Under the pieces are notes generated by a model. That model had not been told where the DNA came from and made no database searches. It worked only from the letters and a program-made list of their open reading frames with translations. A stretch of 63,759 bases of DNA, counting the filler, from Pelomyxa schiedti (Eukaryota; Protista; Evosea), in NCBI GenBank assembly GCA_020536535.1. It is 14 parts of 14 records of this genome, joined end to end, with 100 filler letters (N's around TTAATTAATTAA, not from the genome) between each part and the next. Parts side by side here need not be neighbours in the genome. Positions count along the whole stretch, not along the records: positions 15,067 to 28,558 come from JAHLWZ010001192.1; 13 more parts are not named here. One strand, written 5' to 3'. The translations under genes were made by a program, and so were the position numbers. Below are positions 12,289-28,558 of this stretch, in pieces; the first letter of the stretch is position 1; each line of letters starts with the position of its first letter.

Positions 12289-15191
12289 ATGTACACCAGA
12301 ACTCCCACCCACATTGGACTAACTCAATGTTCAGCACTCGACGGACCACTGGAAAAGCAATAATTACTGAACCACTTAAGCAATGTTCAGCACTACCCAG
12401 GCTGACAAATCTCTCTCTCTACACAACTTTTCACAGGAGACATACCTCTCAAAAAGTGTGCTCTTCCATGGGATGATTGTAGCATACCTCAAGTTTGTCC
12501 CTCCCAAGTTTAGCTTTCACGGCTGACATACCTTTCAGCTGGATTTGTGGAAAGTAGCAACCTCTAAGGCATGGGAGAGTCTTGAGGATCTTGAATCTCA
12601 GGTCGGTGGGGGTGCATCCCTGCAAAAGGGGCTGAAGACCTTGCACAAAAGGAAGAGACCACAAAGGAGAGCAGGTTTCCTTTTTGGATAAAGTAATGGC
12701 TGCTGGACTTCTTGATGGTGATGTGCGCACTGGTGTGCCTGGCCTACCCACACATCGGCAACTAGGTATTGTTTGCTATGCTGTGTATGATGATGCAGTC
12801 AGAGATGAATCCCAAGTTCTGCCTCTCATTGAGAGGTACCTCTCTTTCCTTTGCAAGAAGTCTGAAGGAACTAGGGGAACTTATTTTCTGAAAAAACTTG
12901 AAGATCAGGAGAAGGGAAACAGTTAATTGCCCTTGGGGAGGTTAGTACCTACTATTAGCAATGCTATTCTGAGGGCCTTGCTTCTTTGGATAATTTTTTA
13001 ACAACCTGCGTTTTTACATGACCCACTCAGAATCTCATCACCTCAAAACAGCCAAGTGACGAGTTGCCAATGTTCAATTCTATTGTCATCTCAGTTTTGA
13101 GAAGAACTTCCACATCTTTCCAAGCAAACATAATGCAAGTGGAAGTGGATCTGCTGAGAATGGGACATTACTTGCATCAAGAGTGCCACCATGCTGAGGT
13201 TGTATTTCAACACATGGATTTGTCTACTCTCCAAATTAAATCTAGTTCTTGGTTTTAATGTGTGTGCTCTGGCTCTCTGAGACAACATCAGCTATTTGGG
13301 GAATTGAACCTCCTTGGCTGCTGATCAGAGGAGATACCTGAGACAAACATTGATTCACGAGGTATGATAACTGGAAGTTCCACTGTGGAAAAGGCATTCA
13401 GTAACACAGCACTTGGTTCAGACTGATGGGTTCCGTTTCTACAATTGTAGCGCATGAAAGAAACACTATTGCAATAGAATCATGAACAGAGGCTCAACAG
13501 ACATGNNNNNNNNNNNNNNNNNNNNNNNNNNNNNNNNNNNNNNNNNNNNTTAATTAATTAANNNNNNNNNNNNNNNNNNNNNNNNNNNNNNNNNNNNNNN
13601 NNNNNCTGATCTGCCTGTTTGCCTGTTTGAATTTAAGTTAACTTTGTGATGTGGTTAGTTGTTACCCCCACTGAATTATCAGGTGCCAGGTTACTATTAA
13701 TCGTTCCGGCTTCATTACCCTGTTCATGAAATAGTTGAAGCTATTATTTCCGGTGGATTTAAAAGATTAGAACCCACCAACATTAATTATTGTTATTTAA
13801 TATTGCAATCTGTCATTTTGTACCGAATTTCTGCGTCTTCTCGTCCGGATCAGTGTGTTGATCAGGCCCAATGTGGGACAACATCTCATCGGACAATGCC
13901 GACAAGGCTAACCAAAAATCTTCGTCCCCATGCAACTGGGTGCGCACGCCATGCACGAAAAAGTCACTTTTGTGCGTCGTTTTTCTCGGCTCGGGGGAGC
14001 CTCACTGTGTCCGTGAACGCACTCCTCGGTCTGCCTGCAGGATGCGCACCTTACCGCCACTTGGCTGAAGAAAAAAAACACCGGACCGCGGACGATAACG
14101 AAAATGACAGCGTTCCGGTCTGTTGATTATTTTATGAAGGTGGAGGACCCCGGGCGCTCGGGGACCAGTACGCCGTGGACCACGTCCACTGGCGTGCGTG
14201 TCGGTGAGAGGAGGGTGTAGCGGCTCCCCTGGGGAGCGTGGGCCGACCCCGAGGGTGGCGTGGACACACACGGCGTGAAGGCAACAACCACTCCACTCAA
14301 TCCCCTCTCTCTTCTCCTCCTTCCGTTGTGGCATTTTGGTGGCAAGTCGTGCTGTCGTAGGTATCTATTTTCTTTTGTTTTGTTGTTTCTCGTTTGTTTT
14401 GTTTTGGTTTTTTTTTTTTTCTCTTTCGAGCTGTTGAGCCAACGCTTCAATCAGTTCTTTTTGTTTTGCTTTCTTTTTCTTTGTCTCGTGTTATTTAAGT
14501 TTGTTTTATTTCGTTTTCGGTTAGCTTAGTCTTGTTTTTGTTCTTGTTCTCACCTCAACACAGAAGATTCCATGACGAGGAGAAGGGCACAGCGGTATGT
14601 TTCCATTTCTCTTCCGCTTTTCTTTTTTGACTTCTCACATTTGACAACCAGGTGGTGTTGTAGATGTCAGCAGAATGTGTGTGCAGCTCGGCTCCATTCC
14701 ACCGGTATTCCTCTTCTTTGATTCAAACTGTATGCAGTGGGAGTGTCGGCATTGTGGATCTCTGACTTTCAGCAGCTCAGCCCCTCACTGGTTTGTTTCT
14801 TATTTCTTCTTTTTCTCATTTCACCACGACAGACTGTCACCATGGAAATCCCCCTCTCCCTTTTCATCCACTCAGGAGAATGGTGTGCGCAGCTCTGCTC
14901 CGCTTTTCCTCGTCAGGTTTTAGCCTTTTTTTCAGACCCAGTATTGCATCACCTCCAATCCCAGATNNNNNNNNNNNNNNNNNNNNNNNNNNNNNNNNNN
15001 NNNNNNNNNNTTAATTAATTAANNNNNNNNNNNNNNNNNNNNNNNNNNNNNNNNNNNNNNNNNNNNTGATGTCGATGGTGGGGTTGTGCGCTAGAACTTT
15101 GAATGTGGTTTCGGCGTTGCCGCAACTAACGGCCGACAACAGCTCGTCTTCGGGCCTCCGCGACGTACCGAAATCGCTGTAAAACATTTTC

Positions 15192-18100
15192 TCAAAACGG
15201 AATTTTTTTTAGGGGTGGTTTGTGGAATGTGAGTACGGTGTGGGCTAGTGTTGTCACGTTGTCAGGGGGCGAGAACATTGTCCAGTGGTCACCCGGAGTC
15301 GTCGCGTGCTGAGTGACAGCGTTGCCCTGCCCTTGTCCTCCGGCTGCGGCGGCCTGTTCGACAGCCTCGTCAGCGTGTTGGTCCATGACTTGGGCGGTGT
15401 CGAGCTGCAGCAGTGACTTGACGAACTCGTCGTTGTTGGAGGCCCACACTGTAAGAACCGGAGCATTCCACAGTTCAAGGCTGGAAGATGATGATGATTC
15501 CGGAGTTCCGGTTGATGATTCTGATGATTCTGAGGATTCGGATTGGAGGAGCAGGCTGTCGACTAGGGGTAGTGCCTGGTCGGTGAGGTGGATGTCCTGC
15601 ATGAGGTTCTTCACGAGGTCCTGGGCGACCTGGCGCTCCTCAGCGGTATCGTACTTGCACGCGGCGAAGAAGTGGTCCCACTTGGCTTTCTCGTCCGTAA
15701 GCAGCTTCAGCTCTGCCCGGAGCGACGCGGCCGCGACGCCGGACATGCGGCCCTGGCCGCGGACAAACAGGCACATGGAATCCTCCACGTTGCTGGCTGA
15801 TTTGTCCTGTTGCATTGGTTAGTTATGGGAAGTGGAAAGGAAAGGGGGAGGAGAGTGTTTCGCATACGGAAACGTGAGTGGCGTCGATAAGAACTAAGGA
15901 TTCGACTTTGTGGCCCATGGAAATGAGCTTGGTGGCGACGAGCTGTCCCACAATTCCACCGGCCGAGTGGCCGACGATCGTGTAGGGCTCCTTGCAAGTG
16001 GCCAATATTGCTGCGATGTTGCTGTTGACAAGTGCGGTGAGGTCCGTCACATTGTATCCTCGTTGTACAACGTGTACAGCCTAGTTTCAATCAAGTTATT
16101 TATGTAATCAAGTTGTTTGAACAGTATAACTGAGGTTATAACTTATTGTAAATTAAATTGGTATAGAAAGTGTACCCAATTCTCCATCAGTGGGGCAAAG
16201 CTCGAAAATATAGTCTGATTTCCACCGGCTGGTGGGAACAAGAAGACGTGTTTCTTGGAGTCAGGGTTGGTCATTGTGGTGATGACTGATGCTTCTTCCA
16301 CTGGCTTGGCGGTTGTTTCTTGAACTCCGGAAGAGGAAGACATGCCTTCCATCTGAGTAACAAGAGCCAGCGCAATCTGGTTTACAGATGTTAAGATCAG
16401 TCTTGTTTATTTTATTTGTTTACGATTGCGGCGTTACCTTGGAAATTGGAGGGCCGCCCATCAGCAAGACAATGGAGATTGGGATACCGACTTCCTGCTC
16501 AAGTTTTGCACGAACTTCCACAGCCACCATACTGTCTAATCCCATGTCGGTAAGTGGTTTGTTAACATCAACCTGATCCTGCATTTATGTCAGGTATACA
16601 CTTATACAGATGTTCTCTCCATACGGGTTTGAATGATAGGACAGTAGAAATTGTTTCCACAATGCGCCGTTGCATCATTTCCAAACGCTGGGTCCCAGCG
16701 GGGAGCGCAAGCATCTTCTGCATGAATAACTTGCCAGCTGAGGACTGGGCACCAGCAAGTTTCACCACGTTCTGGAACCTGTTTAGGTGTGAGAAAGTGT
16801 CTTCCGATCCGAATTTGACTGACCTTGGGTTCTGGTTTGTGGGGGAGAATGCAGCCCATTGTGCCCAGTCGATTCGTACAACAGCAATGTGTGGTGGGAG
16901 AGGGGTATTGGTGAAAATGAGTGACCCAAGCAGGTCAACAACTTCAGAGGAACTGAGTATCACCAAGCCTGAGTAAAATGTCAGAGGTGCCAAATTACTT
17001 TTTTCCAAGTATACCTTGGGCCTGCATTCCTCTGCGAACGTTTTCAGGTAGTTTAGCCGTCATACCAGCAAGAATTGGACCCCAGTTGATAGCTAAGCAA
17101 GGAAGACCCATCTTTCTTCTCTTGTGGGAGAGCCCATTCAAGAAAGAGTTACCTGCGGCATAGTTTGCTTGTCCTACCAAAGCAAAAACCATGTAAAAAC
17201 CTGGGGCACCCATTTTGGCAGCAATGGACCCGAAAAGAACGAAGAATGACAGAGGTGCTTTCAGCTTCAGTGAGGCTAGGTGCAGATTCCAAGCACCAGA
17301 CACTTTAGGGGCAAGAACTTTGTTTAGCCTATCCCGTGTAAGGTCCTTGACAAAATAGTCGTCAACAAAGCCAGCGCAATGCATTATTCCTCCAATTGGT
17401 GCTACTGCAGTTAGCTCTGCGAATAATGAGTCCACAGCAGCAGGATCGGTGATATCGCCTGAAAAGCATCAGTGGGTTGAATTATGTGTTGTTGTTGTAC
17501 ATCGGTGGATGGAAATGTTTGCTCCTGCACTCCGAAGTCTGTTTAGAAGATCTGTTGGTTCCCGTGCAAAAGGTAAATCAACCAAAGAAACCTATTTTGG
17601 TTGCCCCGTGCCAGCACATCCATTGTGCCACAGATGTACCAAGAGCCCCCAAGCCTCCGGTTAGCTAACACCAAGTCAAAACCACATCCAAGAAAGGAGC
17701 TTCATACCATGTAAATAGCATCTGGATCAAAGCTGGTTGGACAGGTGTCTGTTGCATGAACTGTCGATTCAAGATCAACAGTGACGAGTATCTTGCCAAT
17801 GTGATTGGCTGCGGCCATAAGTCGGAAAGCATGGACCGCATCTGTGATTGGGAAAGCAGTGTAGGGTATTGGCTTGATTGTACCATCTTTTACATGATTA
17901 AGACAGTGAAAGGTGAAAAACTAACAACTCAACCTTCTAGTTTTGATTCCACCTCCCTAAGCAATTCCGAGAAGTATACAGGGTCAGAATCACAGAGAAC
18001 ATCAATGGCAACACTGGCTACAAGAAGGTTCTTTGCAAATGGCTTCAGAGGAAGCTTGCTATTTTCGAAGATGTCCCGTTTTCCAATTTCAATAAATCTT

Positions 18101-21100
18101 CCTTTGTGACGAAGAAGGTGGTAGGATCGGACTAATCCCTCTCCCATTAACGAGTTGAGAACAACATCCACTCCTTCTCCATGTGTAATTTTCATGATCT
18201 AAATGCAATCAAAAAATAGTTCTTCTAAGTGAGGATATACCTGATCAGCAAAGGTTAAGGATCGGGAGTTGAAAATGTGGTCCTCTGGAATGCCAAGCTT
18301 ATTTACCAAGAATTCGCGCTTCTCTTTCTTTCCAACAGTGGCAAACACTTCGCAACCATAATGCTGGCAGAGTTGAACAGCAGCAATTCCAACTCCTCCA
18401 CTTGCAAGGTGAACCAGTACCCTCTCTCCTTTTTTAATATGTGCAACGCGTACTAAGCCTTCATAGGCAGTTAGAAGAACACCTACTTCCAATTAGCAGG
18501 AGACTGAGACGTTATTATATTCGTAACCTGTGGAGGCCACAGCTTCTTCCATAGTGAGATTGGAGGGTTTCTTAACACACAAATGGGCAGGAGTAACAAA
18601 GTGTGAGGCAAATGTTCCGTTGGCGATAGCTATTACAGGGTCTCCAACTGCAAACCCGGTTACACCCTTCCCAACACGGACAATGGTCCCAGCAGCCTCC
18701 AGCCCAACAAGTGTGGAATCATCTTCAGCAGGGTAGAGGCCCATAGCTCGCATTACATCTCGGAAATTGAGAGAAGAAGCTCTCACTTGAATTTCCACCT
18801 CACCCTCTTTTATCAAGTTTAGACTACGGTGTTGTGGTGTTAGAGAAATACCCTTTGGTTCCATTCTTGGAATATGGCACAGGGTCAAACTGTCTAAAAC
18901 CCCTCGCTTACTAATCTCAAGCCGGTAGGCTCCTTTTGAAGCAGTTGTATCGATGATTCGTGAGAGTGACGGTACAACACTTTGCATGAGGCGGTTTCCC
19001 CAAAGTGAAGTACTCCTTATTCCAACAAGGTTATCTTTCCCTGGAGAAAGAATCTCATGTGCTAAAGTAGTTATTTCACTGGGTTTTAGTTAGTGCTGAA
19101 GTGAAGTGCGGAAAGTTTATTGTTACTTTGCAGTTGGAGTGAGGCTCAGATCGATCATGCGAGTGGAAAATGCGGCATATTCCTGAAGCAAAACGTTGGA
19201 GAGGCCCCACAATGCAGATTGGTGAGGGTCAATATCTGTATCTTGTTCGGTAACTTCCTGGATGCCGGTTATGAAGTAATGTGTTTTTGTATAGGCATAC
19301 CTGGCTCCCAGCAGTCACAAGCCACAGTCTAGGTTGGAGTGCGGACTTACCAAGTGCTTGCAAGAACAAAATGGCATCCAGCAGTCCCTCGTTGGCGGGT
19401 TGTTTTACAGCCCACATGAACACCATGAAGATGGGTTGCCCGTCAGCCTGTAAATATCAATACTTGGAAATGGGAAAATGGGAAAACCTGTGCCTCAATA
19501 TGGCTAATCACAGACGGCAACTCATTGGAAGGACATGCCAAGTCTTGACCATTCAATTCCACGCTGTTGGCCTTGCGAATTGAAAAAACAGATCCCCCAG
19601 ACTTGCGTAAAATGCTTACAAGCTCATCCCCATACACCCCTTCAGAGAATACAACAAACTTGCCATTGGGTTTGGTGGGTGGAGCTGGGGAAGTGGTAAT
19701 TGGGGCCCACTCTGTGTGGTAAAACACATCTGTAGATCTTCGTGTGTCTTCAACATAATTGCAGCGGAAGCCATCAATGCAGGCAATTGGCTCACCAGAC
19801 TCAGTGAATATAACCAGGTCCCCAATAAGAGCTAAAACACAATCAATTGTTGTAAATGTGGTTGCTGAGATAACCTCTTGGAGATACAGTGGTAATTTTA
19901 ACATGACAGTACAAGTCTTGAACAGGACTGCGGAAGAAGCGGACTCTATCCATATGGAAGGGCAGATAAATTCCATGAATGTCCTCATTCCTCAGGAAAA
20001 AGATGGCACCAAGACACTGTCAATGAAATTAAAACGGAGGGAAACAAGTAAGTTATCACTACCTGCATCGTTGCGTCCAAAACGGGTGGATGGAAACAGT
20101 ACTTGTCTAAATTGGTGGCAATGTGATCTGGTACATGCAACACCCCGAGAAGCTCGTTATTTCCCACATGAAGGGCACGTATGCTCTTGAACGCAGGTCC
20201 TAACTGGAGTCCCCTCTCCCACATTGCAGTATAGTAGTCTTGCCCACTCACAGAAGCAGTGTTGCAGCGAGCAATTATAGCTGCCGGCGACTCTGGTTGT
20301 GGCAAAGCTCCAGCAAGCCAGGAATCCCTCTCACGGTGGACAGTGGTTGTGGCGTGAAGCATATATTGTGGGTTGGGAGTTTCTCTAGAGAAAAGTAAGA
20401 AACAGCATAAAGTAAAGGGAAGAGAACCCGTCGAGAGTGCTATACAAAGATACCGTTGCCTCGTACGGCGATGTTACAACAAACGAAGTTTGGATAATTG
20501 GTTCACTGTTTGCAGCTGGAAGGAAAAGAGGACGTAAAAACTTAACATCAGTGATCACTTGTGGGCCTTTCCCGAACACCTGGGGGTGTACCACTTAGGT
20601 GAAAAAAACCCTAAAAGAAGATACCGCTGTTGCGGCTTCCAGTGAGCACTCAATGTAAGTAACACCAGGTATAAGTACAGATCCAAACCCTTTGTGGTCG
20701 TACTCCCATTCAAGTGGAGTGCCAGCCGAGACTGAAGCACGCCAGGCTTTAACATCAGCGCCAAGAGTGGCCACTTCTTGTGATAGGAAGGGCATTGTTG
20801 TTGCTGGACTTTGAAGCTTCGATTGAAGCAGCTTCCCCTAAAAGAGTAAGAAAAGAAAGATAACAGTAAGGTTTACTTTTTCACTGTTGGTTGGTTGAAA
20901 CCAGTGCCGCTGCTTGTTCCATGAGTATTTAGGTGTGCGAACGAACTGTGCTTTCTCATCAAACATCCAGTCGAAGTCGACCTTGACATTGCACTCGTGC
21001 AGGAAACCAATGGATTGAAGCAAGGTCTTAGACTCTTCTGTGTCTCTCTTCATGGAGGCAATCACATGTCCTGGTACGATCAATTTTCGATTTCGCATGC

Positions 21101-24100
21101 AATCTTAAAATACCTGGTGTTGGGCTTGTACGGAGGGTACTGGAAACATAGTGCGCTAAAACAGGATGGGGGGATAATTCCACGAAGATGCAGTGTCTTT
21201 GCTTAATCAACTCCAGAATTGCCTGGTGGAATTGAACGGGATTTCTTATTTGCTTGGTCCAGTAGGCAGTTTGAAGATCAGTCCCTGTGACAAGGTGAAT
21301 TTGTTGCATTAGCAGAAAAAGGGAAGCGTACCATTGAATCTTGTGCCAGTAAGAGTACTGTAGATCGGAATACTTTCGGGCTTTGGTGAAAGATGAAGCG
21401 CACCAATCTTCGAATCAAGTTCGGGAAGAAGGTTGTCCAATAGATGGCAGTGGAAGGCGTAATTGACTGGTAAGTATTTCGCGTAAATATTCTTAGCCTT
21501 CAGTGCAGTAACAACTGACTCCAGGGCCTCAGCGTCACCACTTAGAACACAGTTCTCCTCACTAAAGAGATTAGAGGATAGCTGATAAACTGACATCAAA
21601 CCTGTTGACAACGGCAACAGCAAGTTTTCCTGAATGAGACGAGATTAACTGTTCGCACTCAGGAAGAGGGAGCCCAACTGCCGCCATCTTGCCTAAACCT
21701 GTGGCTTTGTTCATCACTTCACTTCTGACGTATATTAATCTAGTTGCGTCTTCAAGGGAGAGCACTCCGGCAACATGGAAGGCAGCAATTTCTCTAAGGG
21801 TAATTATTAGATAGGCAGAGACAAATAAAGATATACCCAAGTGAGTGACCAACTACAGCTTGTGGTACAACGCCCATCTGTTTGTAAACTTCCACAAGGG
21901 CAACTTGGATCGCGAAAAGTACTCGCTGTGCACACACTGTCTCCCCAAGGGCACTCTTACTTTCATCACTGTTGAGGATTTCACGGCAAACGGAGAAGGG
22001 AGGCTCCATTGTGGAAAATATAGAATCTATTTTCTCCAGAGTGTTGCGGAAAACAACGTTTTCTCTGATTATCATTGTTAGAGATGGTACTAAACCGGGA
22101 AAAAAGCGCACTTGATCAACTGTTTAGCCATTTTGAAATGCTGTGGCCCCTGTCCACTGAATAGCATCACCAATCGTTGGGATGAAGATGGGGCTGTGCG
22201 AATTCCAGTGTTCCCCTCTAGAGATCCAAAATCAACAAGAGCTTTGCAGAGCGGGGCACGTTGGGACTCCTGACACACAAACGAAGCCCTCTGAGGGTGC
22301 TGCTCTCGGCGGAGCAAGTGGGTATAAGCAACATCCTGGCATCAAGTAAGTAAGAAAGAAAGAGCTGAACTACAAGATCCAACCCGCAGAGCTATTTCAG
22401 GGTGATTTTCAAGGAATTGGCTCAACTTCACAGCTGAAGCCTTAACAAAGTGTTTTCTCAAAAAAGGAAAACCAAAGGAAAATCTCTCATACCCTCAGTG
22501 AAATGGAGGATCTAGCAGATAAAGAAAGAATGTAGGAATTATCATCGGCAGGGAATGGAGAGTCTACTGCCGGTGCTGATTCTATTACTGCGTGAGCATT
22601 GGTTCCGCCAAATCCTAGATACATTGAGTTGGGTGACTTACAAAAAACTATGTACCAAACGAAGAAACGCCAGCAAGTTTCTTTTTGTTGGGATTCCATT
22701 CACCACCTTGACTGACAGAAATTGGAAGTCCATTGAAGTTTATGTGTGGGTTGGGGTTTTCGAAGTGTATGGACTTTGGGATGAAACCGTGGGTCATGGA
22801 AAGAGCAATCTATAGCTTTTATTGGTAAAAGAGAGAAGAAGGAAAAGTCAACCTTTATGATTGAAGCCATTCCCGATGCGCACTCAAGATGACCAATGTT
22901 GGATTTTACGGAACCTATGACAACCCGTTCTGAATCACTGTACGCACCATTGACCCTTCAAAAAAAAAGTGAGAAGGAGAAAGAAGGTAATACAAGATAC
23001 ATTGGAATATGCTTTGACAATACTTCACCAAGACTGTCAACCTCGATATGATCTCCTAAAGAGGTTCCAGTTCCATGACACTCAAAATACCCTGCCTCTG
23101 AAAGATTTCGGTGGGCATTGTGCCATGTGTCAGTATACAAGGCCTGTTGCGCAAGCCCATTTGGTGCTGTGAGGCCGTTGGACTTGCCATCCTGAGGTGC
23201 ATTGGTGAATTACATTTGAGGTAGACTCTTTTCCATACTTGATTGACACCCGTTCCTGCAATAACGCAGTAGACTTTGTCCTTATCGGCGAGAGCATCAG
23301 ATAATTTCTTCAGCACCAACATTCCACAGCCCTCAGATCTGACATAACCATTTGCTCGTGCATCAAAAACAAAGCAACGCCCATCAGGTGAAAGAGCACC
23401 TGGAATGTGTAAGCCAGGCAAAGGGGATTGTGGTGTACCTGTTTTTGTGAGAGTCAGACCGCCAGTGGGAGTCAGAATTGCATTGACACCGCCAGCTAAA
23501 GCTGTAGTGCACTCATTGTTCCTAAGTGCGTTACATGCGAGATGCAAAGCCACAAGAGATGACGAGCAGGCCGTATCCAGGGCGACACTGGGACCTAAGA
23601 ACACACTTAGGTCTTGGACAGCTACAATTTTCCTCACCTCTGAAGTCGAGCAGATAAGATAGCCTATTGGCGTTCATGCAAAGGAAACTACCCGTTGCAA
23701 AGTAAGCATCAGCGACATTTTCATCCAAAAGCTGAGGAAGTGGTTAAAAACATTCAACAATGGCAGAAGCAACAACCTGCAGCTGCCCATAATCCGAAGC
23801 TGAAAGGCCAACGAAGAGTCCAGTCTTAGAGCCTGCCAACATGGATGCAGGGTGCCCTGAATCTTCTAGTGCCTCCCAGGCCATCTGGTCAAGGTTAGAA
23901 CAGCTAAATTGAGGGGGCGGAAAACCTCCATCATAAGTCGCTGTTGTGGATCTAGCCTCTCAGATTCCCTAGGAGATATACCCCAGAACTCCGCATCAAA
24001 CATATCAATGTCACTGATAAATCCTCCCCACTTAGAATTCATTTTCCCTTTCTTTTGCATATCGGCATCATAGAAAGCATGAACATTGAATCTGAATTAG

Positions 24101-27100
24101 ATTACAGGGTGCCTAGACAGTTTGTAATTACCTAGATTGTGGTATTTCAGTTATGGCATCAACACCATTCTTAAGTAAACTCCAATATGAATCCGAGTCG
24201 GTGCACCCTCCAGGGAACCGCAACGCAAAGCCAACAAGGGCAATAACCTCTGAGTCATCAGTTGGAGTAGAAGTAGTCCAGGTTGGGACCACTGGAAGTG
24301 TTTCCTTTTTTGGTGCATCAATCGAAAGAAAATGCCCAAGCACACTACCTTATGTGGTTGCATCAACTCAGCAAGATGTTTTGACAGTAATGAAATTGTT
24401 GGGAAATCATATACTAAGGCGGGAGACACACGTACACCCAACCAGTCACTGAGCGCCGCTGTAATATTAACCACAACCATGGATTCTACTCCGAAATTCC
24501 GTAGCGGAGTATCGATGTCAATGGCTGTTGGGGAGGACTGCAGCGCTTCTGCAAACTCAGCTGTGAGCCAATTTTGAATTTCCTCCTGAGTTTTCACAGG
24601 TTTTTTCTCTTCTTCTTCCGCAGCGGCCTCTTCTGCTTCAGTTTAGTCATAGAAAAACAATAAGTATCAACCTTTTTTAGGCACAAGGCCAGAAACTACA
24701 GGTAAATCACCCACGTACTTTCCCCAGTCAACTCGTGCCACCAGGACTTGAGCAGGGGTCTTTGTTCCTGCCAGGTACCCAAGAGCTCGGAGTGTGTCTG
24801 CGACATTAAGTGTATATAAACCAACTTTGGCACTCATTTCTTCAGCTCGGGTGTCCTGTTCCAACCATTAATGCAGTGGAAACTCCAATAAAGATTACTT
24901 GTTTGTACTGAATAGAGAGCGCAGGCAGATGCAACTTCCGTCTGAACTGTGCCAATGCGTCAAGGAAGCAATTGGCTGCTGTGTAGTGTGCTTGGCCTCC
25001 TTCTATTGGCTCGTTAGCTATGCATTCGATAGTAATTGTAACACACGTGGAACTGCCGAAGCAAGGGACGAGAACAGGACAAAATGCTGTAAAGTGCTGA
25101 CAGTTTGAGAGGCGAGATGCAAGTTCCAGCTACCAACAATTTTGCTGTCGAGAACGTTTTTAATAGACTCGGTGGTCAGATCTTGAATGCGGGCTGCACC
25201 AAAAACCCCAGCAACGTGGAAGATTCCCATCAGGTTATTTGCCTTCTTGACTACAGCAGAGAGCTGCTGAATATCCGAAACGTCAACCTGAGCCACTTCA
25301 ATTGATACTTCCCCATTTTTCCTCATCTTTTCAATTCTAAGAGCTGCCTCAGGCTTTGGGGCACTTCTTCCACACAATATTAAGGATTTAGCTCCTTTCT
25401 CCGTTAACCAGTTGGCAATTTCAAGTCCAAATCCACCTTAATTCATCAGCAATAGTGAGTAAAAAGAAAAAGTACTTAGTCCGCCAGTTATCAGATAAGT
25501 TCCTTTTGGGTCAATGGCAAGTGAAGGCCACTTGGATGAATCGGATGTTGGAAGAAACTTCATTCTCTTCACTAACTTCTGGCCGTTCAACAATGCGACA
25601 GTTGATTCCTGTTTACATTGGGTGAATAGAAAAGCCACTTGCTAAAGTTGTGTACCATAGAACTTTCAATAGTGGAATTACTTATTTCCTTGGCAAGCAG
25701 AGGAATGTCAGCCTGTGACGAGATATCCACAACAGTTGGTTTCATCTGAGGATACTCAAAGGCGGCGGTTTCAAAAATCCCCTTGATAGGAGATTGGAAA
25801 GGATTCATGTTCATAGCATTTCCAACGCCTGATGCAAAACTCAGAGGGTTGGGGAAACTACTATGGCATCTTACCAAAACAGGCATGCGTAATCACCCAG
25901 AATTTAGTTTTGCAAGGAGAGGTCTTATTTAGCGCTTGTAGAAGTCTAACAGGACCCAAAACTGTCGTGGAACAATCACACTCTGATGAAAGATTGCTCC
26001 AGCAGTACACAAAGCCAGATATATCCTGGGAAAAAGGTAACAGGGGAAAAGGAGGGACAAAAAAAAACTTTTGGAAGTTCGTCTGCAAGCGCTGCAAGAC
26101 TCTCGGCTGAAGTAGACGAGGTGAAGGAGTCCTTCCCAGTGCGAGAGAAAGAGGAACCAAGTTCAACATGCACAATATTGTGTTGCTTGAGATGCTGAAG
26201 AAGGGACTCAGAAATAGAGAACCGTGTTGGTGTTTCGTTGGTCATATGATCATGGAAGAGGACAAGAGTAAGCTTATCATTTCGGGATTTGGGTGCTGGT
26301 TGTGTTGGGACCCAGACTGACTCGTACCTATCACAGTGTTCAGGAAATTATAAAGGGAAAACGAAGATTACATGCACTTCTCAAGGGGAGCTGTTCTGGC
26401 AGAGGTTGTTGGCTGCTGTTTCAGCCAAGGAGGAGTGGTGTTGATCCAAAATCGTTGTGGATCCCAAGAAAGTATTGGTAATTGAACATCCCCACAGATT
26501 GTACCAGGCTTGGATTTGAAAGCCTCAGCATTCCCTTCAAAAAGGAACTTCATGAAATCCATCTTTGCACCACCAGCCCACGCCGAAGCAACGTTACTGG
26601 CCAAAGTCAACCGTTCCTTTTCTTTCCTTGAATCATGGTCAGTGCTTAACACTCAAGGTCTTGAGCCTTACCTGATCAATGTAGGAACTGCATTAACATT
26701 CACAGAAAGTGAATCAGCAATCATTCTGATGTACATGCTTAATACAGGATGAGGTGATATTTCAACGAAAGTGGTGTAGCCATCCTAGAGACAAATGAGG
26801 ATTCAGAAAGCCAATGGGTCAGCCATACCTTAATAGCAGCGGAGATTGCTTTCTGGAAATATACAGGCCTTCTTATTTGTTTGCTCCAGTAGTCGGGGGT
26901 GAGTAGTTTCCCACTGATAAGCTCACCTGTGACCGTGGAGTACATAGACACCTTGGTTTCAGATGGCTCAACAAATGATACCTTAAATCGTCATTAAAGT
27001 CATAAAGGTTTGGTGGTTTGGTAGTACTTTTTCAAGAAGTCTGGGAACCAGTGGTTCAAGCTGTGGTGAATGGAAAACATAATTAACAGGGAGGTATTGC

Positions 27101-28558
27101 ATGCGACAGTCAGGATGTGCTTGCTGTATAGCTGAAAGAAATAAGAGGTGTGACAAATGATGGGTGAAATACCATTTAAACATTGTGTTAAGTGTTCCTC
27201 ATCACCAGAAAGTACAACTGATTTGGGAGCATTATAGGACGCAACAGAAATGAAATCCTGGAAAGGCACGACAAAATTATCTGCTTCTTCGGCTGTTAGA
27301 TTCACAGCACACATTTTGCCCTTTCCTGTCTGCGAAAGAGTCCGGTTACTTATGGTCTAACAGCGGTTCTATTCATACCGCTTCTTGCATTAGATTTGCC
27401 CGGGCAAATATCAACTTGCAAGCTGTATCCAAATCTAAAGCACCACATATGTGTGCAGCAGGTATCTCACCAAGGGAATGGCCAAGGACTGCGCTGAACT
27501 CGAGTCCAAAATGTTCCCACAAATGGGCAAAGGAGACCTGCACATAGGAGTTGGGAGAGTCCTAAACAGCGGGAATTCACAACCTCAAAGAGGAAAAGTA
27601 CAACTTGAGCAACTCTGGTCTGATCCAAAAGGGATTCTTCTACACTCATTTTGCTAAGCTCTTCTCTTATATCCCAGTCCATGCCAAACTCATCAAAGTG
27701 AGTTCCCAGTTCATCACACATCTCTCGGTAATAATCATTGGTAAGGTAGAGCTCACGACCCATGGCATACCACTGTGGGCCTATAGGTATAGTGAGAAGT
27801 GTTTACTAACCAGTAATTACCTTGCCCAGAAAAAACAAGACAAGTCTTATTTTTCCCCGCTACAGCAGTCCCAATGACTGGTTTTCTGGATCCCTTGTTT
27901 TCAGGGGTCTGACAAAGATTAGAATATAAAGGTTGATGATTTAGTACCTCATTGAGATAAGCATCAAGTTGGTTAGCCATTATCTCTGCACTAATGCCAA
28001 CGACTGCCATTCGATGCTTTCTAAGGTCTCTTCTGGTTAGAGATGACAGACAAATCTAAGAGTATTAGAAAAGTGAAAAAGTTGTGCAATAACAGAAAAA
28101 CCTTATAAAGAGGAGGTGGTTCATCCTGAGACAAGAGAGCAAGATACTTGGCAGCAACCCGTCGAAGTGCTTCTGGAGAGTGTGCACTAAAAGGCAGTAC
28201 CCAAATGCGGTCATCAACTTCAGGTTCCTCAATTGACGGGGGAGGGGCGTTGCACAAAATTGCGTGTGCGTTTGTTCCTCCAAAACCAAACGAGCTAACT
28301 CCTCCAATAAGTCCCTTCTCTGACTCTGGCCAGTCCATAACCTTTTTCTTTGTTTAAGTTTCTTTGTTTTCGAAGTGAGACTTACCTCGGTAACAACTTG
28401 AACAGGCATATTTGTGAAGTCAATGTTAGGGTTTGCGGTTTTAAAGTGCAATGATGCAGGGATCTTCTTAGAGTGAATGCACAAAGCCAATTTGATGAGC
28501 CCTGCCAACCCTGCACATGCTTCCAAATGCCCAATGTTACTTTTGGCGGAGCCAATGA
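15192..28558 (-). CDS. Modular type I polyketide synthase, 5' partial: (KS)-AT-KR-ACP-KS-AT-DH-ER-KR-ACP-TE, dozens of short introns
   Basis: KS1: [26 protein letters not shown]1: FSGQG, GHSLG, YVFH. KR1: [18 protein letters not shown]1: FGVESM. KS2: DTACSSS, HGTGT, NIGHLE. AT2: FSGQG, GHSLG, YAFH. DH: [24 protein letters not shown]: SLNFRDV, LASGGVG. KR2: [19 protein letters not shown]2: MGLDSM. TE: FPPAGG, GHSAGG, LIDA, GDHWTM. Confidence 0.95.

Follow-up and report, generated by a model that had tools for sequence, protein, structure and literature searches.

A compact, intron-rich nuclear gene of Pelomyxa schiedti probably encodes the last two modules and thioesterase of an assembly-line type I polyketide synthase

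Results

The 3' part of a polyketide synthase gene on the minus strand

The window in this study is a 63,759-nucleotide (nt) stretch of DNA from Pelomyxa schiedti (assembly GCA_020536535.1) made of 14 joined parts, and the piece that we analyzed is the part at positions 15067-28558 (JAHLWZ010001192.1), which carries the 3' part of a polyketide synthase (PKS) gene. The minus strand of this piece has more and longer open stretches than its plus strand, and none of the eight long plus-strand open reading frames (ORFs) gave a Pfam match. On the minus strand, 28556 down to 15192 forms one reading frame of ∼3,636 codons in a script-built model of 55 exons and 54 GT-AG introns, with the stop codon at 15192-15194 and the 5' end cut by the edge of the piece. 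The model was obtained by dynamic programming in which 15 introns listed from RNA were forced, and the remainder was curated by motifs and bacterial templates. Four public sequencing runs of one study carry the stretch: X1 and X2 are DNA-like, and X3 and X4 are single-cell RNA-seq, labelled "protist metagenome." Pfam was run on stop-free minus-strand pieces and on single exons; database, family, and structure searches were performed exon by exon, and the spliced protein was compared in scripts. We conclude with good confidence that the piece covers the final 13.4 kb, at the 3' end, of a single expressed nuclear gene for a type I assembly-line PKS with integral acyltransferases (cis-AT), comprising its last two modules and a thioesterase, whose product would be a 5-hydroxy acid or δ-lactone. 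The features of the locus, all on the minus strand, are as follows.

15192..28556, minus strand: PKS gene fragment (scripted gene model with the RNA-confirmed introns; Pfam per exon)
28213..28556, minus strand: ketosynthase 1 (KS1), C-terminal part (PF02801, 3.8e-10; PF16197, 1.9e-13; second catalytic His in KSNIGH, 28527-29)
26626..27845, minus strand: acyltransferase 1 (AT1; PF00698; GHSLGE Ser, 27475-77; YVFH; exons confirmed by X4 record 21)
25674..26379, minus strand: structural ketoreductase subdomain (psiKR) of module 1 (aligns with the module 2 psiKR; exons within the 1,276-nt X3 record 18)
24899..25515, minus strand: ketoreductase 1 (KR1; PF08659, 8.3e-32, match 25437-24900; Tyr, 24983-85)
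24367..24588, minus strand: acyl carrier protein 1 (ACP1; PF00550, 6.8e-14; Ser, 24481-83, in GVES)
22583..24250, minus strand: ketosynthase 2 (KS2; PF00109 and PF02801; Cys, 23566-68; His, 23075-77; His, 22889-91)
21048..22176, minus strand: acyltransferase 2 (AT2; PF00698 on four exons, match 22123-21031; GHSLGE Ser, 21842-44; YAFH)
19812..20801, minus strand: dehydratase (DH; PF14765, PS-DH, 3e-17; His, 20694-96, in HxxxGxxxxP; Asp, 20075-77, in DxxxQ)
17747..18858, minus strand: enoylreductase (ER; PF08240, 1e-13; PF00107; PF13602; LNFRD and GGVG NADPH motif)
17037..17734, minus strand: ketoreductase 2 (KR2; PF08659, 1.9e-33; Tyr, 17160-62; VDD at the LDD position)
16438..16684, minus strand: acyl carrier protein 2 (ACP2; PF00550, 1e-9; Ser, 16531-33, in GLDS)
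15195..16256, minus strand: terminal thioesterase (TE; PF00975, 2.2e-11 on the Ser exon; Ser, 15964-66; Asp, 15883-85; His, 15285-87)

Domain architecture and catalytic residues

Pfam matches and motifs place the domains in the order KS(C-part)-AT-psiKR-KR-ACP-KS-AT-DH-psiKR-ER-KR-ACP-TE. The initial annotation, made from the sequence before this analysis, had proposed a KR-only module followed by a fully reducing module and a TE within one gene, and this is the Pfam order, with ACP1 and KS2 bridged by an RNA contig. At least two KS-bearing modules thus lie on one polypeptide, with the ACP of one fused to the next KS; both modules carry an AT with its active-site Ser (PF00698, GHSLGE twice), one PP-binding domain, and a module-specific reductive loop (KR in one, DH-ER-KR in the other), and the protein ends in a release domain (PF00975) with Ser, Asp, and His, the exon with the His not being significant on its own. 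These are the features by which a cis-AT modular PKS is recognized. The Ketoacyl-synt_C and KAsynt_C_assoc matches of KS1 span 28556-28100, the Acyl_transf_1 matches of AT1 27800-27000, and the ADH_N and ADH_zinc_N matches of the ER region 19089-17932; KS2 carries DTACSSS, ECHGTGT, and KSNIGH, with ketoacyl-synt and Ketoacyl-synt_C matches over 24096-22700.

As read from these motifs, the catalytic residues are all in place. The same had been claimed at the outset, and it stands for KS2, both ATs, the KRs, the DH, the ACP Ser residues, and the TE Ser; the TE Asp had to be moved, to the LIDATH motif at 15883-85. The DH also carries a YGPAF-like motif, and both KRs have the Rossmann TGGxGxxG and the Lys/Ser/Tyr set. 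Around its phosphopantetheine Ser, ACP1 reads GVES (24481-24492), which is unusual, G-x-D-S being typical there.

Module 1 had been described as lacking a DH motif between AT1 and KR1, and a search for a cryptic DH agreed: the 318 residues from AT1 to the KR1 Rossmann motif contain neither HxxxGxxxxP nor a match to a Pfam family. This spacer aligns with the psiKR that follows the DH in module 2 and not with the module 2 DH, which argues that module 1 is KR-only. A Phe in the xxFH motif of an AT points to malonyl units, and the motifs of AT1 (YVFH) and AT2 (YAFH) suggest that both are malonyl-specific. The VDD of KR2 is B-type-like, which fits a following DH.

The TE carries FPPAGG and GHSAGG; its Asp follows the Ser by 27 residues, PGDHWTM lies 33 residues before the C terminus, and the best PDB match of the domain is the DEBS TE. 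Against a script-built profile of the terminal TEs from 10 bacterial hits, the N-terminal half scored 42 bits and GDHW fell on the His column, in a second match that is not significant alone; this His would be the catalytic one by its colinearity with the thioesterase profile only. An Atlas search gave a weak thioesterase lead for the last exon, which encodes a Ser/Glu-rich and Ala/Gly/Gln-rich low-complexity insert in an expanded TE lid.

The gene is nuclear, spliced, and transcribed as one unit

RNA contigs from X3 and X4, aligned to 22600-28558, skip 39-49 nt at many places, with ends that read CT..AC on the plus strand, equivalent to GT..AG on the gene strand. Such joints show at least 15 GT-AG introns directly, and others follow from RNA contigs whose lengths equal the model exactly. 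X3 record 18 (1,276 nt) equals the summed model exons from 26541 to 25047 exactly, as does X4 record 21 (1,380 nt) across 28558-26828, and introns 26785-26828 and 22956-23000 were also confirmed, by loose ends of RNA contigs. X3 record 17 (733 nt, 24851-23996) has three introns spliced out and runs from the KR1-ACP1 linker through ACP1 into KS2 with its frame open; the two modules therefore belong to one transcript and one reading frame, and the stop between ACP1 and KS2 that would have divided them is found neither in this contig nor in the model. RNA contigs extend 787 and 1,391 nt past 28558, and the transcript thus holds at least the rest of KS1 and ∼130 more codons.

The DNA-like runs X1 and X2 show how the sequence varies. 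Among 40 listed differences from the window, 22 are synonymous third-position changes, six are non-synonymous, and 12 are intronic, and all four indels (4/4) lie within introns. Because the differences are mostly synonymous and the indels confined to introns, they support the reading frame and point to purifying selection. The evidence for expression and for purifying selection covers the 5' half of the piece. We conclude that this is a nuclear, spliced, and transcribed gene of a microbial eukaryote and that it is under purifying selection; the dozens of GT-AG introns put forward initially as the mark of a nuclear gene are now represented by 15 RNA joints and 54 modelled introns.

These data bear on whether the locus could instead be two adjacent single-module genes, a bacterial contaminant, or a chimeric contig. 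Its best database matches are bacterial and GC content shifts at the 3' end, as such explanations would have it, but spliced RNA with 39-49-nt GT-AG introns rules out a bacterial gene, identity to bacterial proteins is only 30-35%, an RNA contig crosses the ACP1-KS2 boundary with the frame open, and the TE continues across the GC shift in the order Ser, Asp 27 residues on, His. We regard all three explanations as scarcely credible.

An extreme intron regime

The 54 introns in 13.4 kb, about four per kb, constitute an extreme intron regime. Their lengths in the model are 39-95 nt (median 44), with 51 of the 54 at 39-52 nt; the three nearest the last exon (61, 95, and 61 nt) are longer than the rest. 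Introns are 37% GC and exons 48%. Phase 0 is commonest (28/17/9), and 32 of the 54 have a YTRAY branch-like motif at 5-25 nt upstream of their 3' end. Two other gene models were rejected: a minimum-intron model excised the ECHGTGT motif of KS2, and a self-trained model dropped AT and TE exons despite RNA evidence that they are exonic.

Up to three in-frame intron candidates exist beyond those modelled. In KS2, 23400-23438 is a stop-free, in-frame GT..AG stretch of 39 nt that encodes 13 residues without a counterpart in any bacterial template; no RNA joint is listed at 23400-23438, and a further intron there is probable. A second candidate, of 27 nt at ∼17174-17200 and likewise in frame with GT..AG ends, directly precedes the KR2 Tyr. 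It encodes nine residues (FYMVFALVG) without a counterpart in the templates and, being too short for the local introns, may be a true insert. The third candidate is an in-frame GT..AG stretch at 16779-16823.

Relatives and origin

When the 118-residue KS2 exon was the query of an exhaustive HMMER search, the matches were giant multi-KS proteins, at 46-63% identity on that exon. Ten of these matches were looked up, and the seven with a named source were all bacterial (Sorangium, Saccharothrix, Actinokineospora, Dactylosporangium, and Marininema); the search over representatives ranks by summed score, which lets giant bacterial PKSs take up the ranking and could mask a closer relative with a single KS. 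A word-index protein search with the KS2 piece likewise gave fragments at 43-62% identity, those with a named source being bacterial, under length limits that hide full-length eukaryotic proteins. The best fragment from the word-index search (P0154) was considered as a eukaryotic relative and rejected, given its bacterial neighbourhood and its frameshifts; it lies in a bacterial metagenome contig (L001:7998-20768) in which a hybrid of PKS and nonribosomal peptide synthetase is chopped into many short ORFs, apparently by assembly frameshifts.

Among solved structures, the KS2 exon scored highest against CurL (112 bits), followed by GfsA and PikA (92), DEBS/Lsd14 and MAS (83), Dictyostelium Pks16 (78), LovB (70), and animal fatty-acid synthase (FAS; 57). 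The whole model aligned by script with the best bacterial proteins at 30-35% identity, and a Sorangium PKS gave a colinear alignment with two successive modules over 2,084 residues. These comparisons show an enzyme of bacterial modular type that is distant from every sequence found. Recent horizontal transfer is excluded because overall identity to bacterial proteins is 30-35%; an ancient transfer would be possible. A literature search found no named orthologue.

With bacterial cis-AT modular PKSs (Sorangium, the actinomycete lines, CurL, and DEBS) the gene shares the ACP-KS fusion between modules, the psiKR-KR or DH-psiKR-ER-KR loop, and a PF00975 TE. It differs from them in being nuclear, with ∼54 spliceosomal introns, in its overall divergence, in a 13-residue KS2 insert (or an unspliced 39-nt intron), and in its enlarged low-complexity TE lid. 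The Dictyostelium iterative PKSs (Pks16 and Steely) share the type I KS-AT-DH-ER-KR-ACP chemistry and belong to an amoeboid eukaryote, but they are single-module enzymes, whereas this gene fuses two KS-bearing modules.

A predicted 5-hydroxy acid or δ-lactone, and the points that weigh against it

If the modules work in the order in which they are encoded, AT1 and AT2 would load malonyl units, in keeping with their xxFH motifs, and the penultimate, KR-only module would leave a 3-hydroxyl on the chain. The last module would then add a fully reduced C2 unit and so shift the hydroxyl to C5, as the initial annotation had deduced from the same succession of a KR-only and a fully reducing module. 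The TE would release the chain by hydrolysis, as a 5-hydroxy acid, or through attack by the 5-OH, as a δ-lactone; the product is predicted from colinearity only. Chain length and starter would be set by the 5' part of the gene beyond the piece, which continues for at least 1.39 kb according to the RNA contigs.

Several points weigh against the assignment as a whole or in part. The 5-hydroxyacyl or δ-lactone product assumes colinear, non-iterative use of the modules, which cannot be read from sequence; the modules may also iterate or be skipped. KR1 lacks both the LDD motif and the diagnostic Trp and is not typable by the usual motifs. Exons downstream of 22600 are predicted from the model, the RNA check being confined to 22600-28558. 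The last exon (15192-15806) is unusually long (615 nt) and deviant in composition, with 58% GC and a GC content at third codon positions of 0.69, as against 0.43 elsewhere, and taken alone it matches no thioesterase in Pfam or PDB. Finally, the model needs a 40-nt intron at 17552-17591 in KR2, and in another frame this stretch aligns with the β2 segment of the template bacterial KRs. The spot would be either a 1-nt assembly error, a KR2 without its β2 strand, or a real frameshift.

The last of these would mean a decaying gene, with the protein cut short by a genuine 1-nt frameshift near 17592, ahead of the KR2 core, ACP2, and the TE. The removed 40 nt do align with the KR β2 region in the other frame, and a read-through version with X at the break scores slightly better, with fewer gaps, than the spliced version. 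On the other hand, the length and the GT-AG ends of the stretch match the intron population, the ACP2 and TE frames downstream are open with their motifs intact, and an assembly indel is the simpler explanation. We consider decay very unlikely.

The chemistry could also be that of a lipid or fatty-acid-type megasynthase like the multimodular FAS/PKS enzymes of apicomplexans, whose modules would iterate or elongate a long acyl primer to yield a long-chain hydroxy fatty acid for wall or membrane. Both ATs look malonyl-specific, Pfam and motif reading revealed neither a methyltransferase nor any further tailoring domain, the full reduction in the last module is FAS-like, and CpFAS1-like protist synthases are acyl elongases (PMC2995488). 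Set against this, the terminator is a thioesterase and not the reductase of CpFAS1 and CpPKS1, modular PKSs outscore FAS by a wide margin as matches to the KS2 exon, and a KR-only module is not FAS-like. We hold this alternative possible, though clearly less probable than a colinear assembly line.

Sequence upstream of KS2 in the DNA-like runs

Over 23830-28558, X1 and X2 are broken into contigs of 260-1270 nt, each at about twice the depth of the long contig that covers 22600-23829. Relative to the window these contigs show 1-2% differences, with loose ends that depart from it at 24685, 26183, 26747, and 27912; the RNA runs match the window's letters over the same interval. Upstream of ∼23830 this pattern could reflect allelic sequence, a paralogue, or duplication of an upstream module, with a breakpoint inside KS2. 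Contigs of X1 and X2 also join 24710 to 26161, skipping 1,450 nt, with CC..AA ends, four extra letters, and 23 letters on one side; this joint is not an intron; a repeat, or misassembly of similar PKS sequences, probably accounts for it.

Since the doubled depth and the broken contigs begin in the N-terminal part of KS2 and continue upstream, the KR-only module may be repeated there. The piece would then be the tail of a longer line whose upstream, near-identical KR-only modules make a 1,3-polyol δ-lactone. This would be a lipid of a new class, for signalling or defence, in a protist lineage without a known modular PKS product. We regard this extension as a doubtful speculation. A contig search for the upstream part with two ORFs of the window gave no match, and an exact 31-nt pattern from the first exon was not present in JGI metagenome contigs.

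Discussion

The gene described here very probably encodes the end of a cis-AT assembly line, and its kind is already known among eukaryotes. Assembly-line PKSs in eukaryotes make up ∼4% of catalogued members; they are plentiful in dinoflagellates and apicomplexans and are also recorded from amoebae and choanoflagellates (PMC10394414). Multimodular PKSs are common in algae (PMC4661987) and have been described in apicomplexans (PMC9301873, PMC2995488), where synthases such as CpFAS1 act as acyl elongases. Novelty had been argued initially on the ground that such lines are typical of bacteria and some apicomplexans and algae; since catalogues already list assembly lines from amoebae and choanoflagellates as well as from apicomplexans, dinoflagellates, and algae (PMC10394414, PMC4661987), that argument is weaker than claimed, and this gene adds a member to a known kind.

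The likeness to other eukaryotic assembly lines, namely CpPKS1/CpFAS1, Toxoplasma TgPKS2, the chlorophyte and haptophyte PKSs, and those in amoebae and choanoflagellates, is that all are nuclear multimodular type I enzymes of protists, a comparison drawn from their descriptions. There are also clear differences. Cryptosporidium CpPKS1 and CpFAS1 have no introns and terminate in a reductase, whereas this gene is rich in introns and its C terminus is a thioesterase, so that the C-terminal reductase of the CpFAS1/CpPKS1 type is missing; any counterpart of their N-terminal acyl ligase-ACP loader would fall beyond the edge of the piece. Many algal multimodular PKSs draw on acyltransferases in trans, whereas this one is cis-AT.

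The known distribution of assembly-line PKSs is unchanged by this gene, which does provide a well-validated case of an extreme intron regime. To our knowledge, hardly any product of a eukaryotic assembly-line PKS has been identified. As an expressed, compact gene with intact catalytic residues, whose last two modules and TE can be read, it is a tractable candidate for heterologous expression, through which a hydroxy acid or lactone could be traced to a protist gene.

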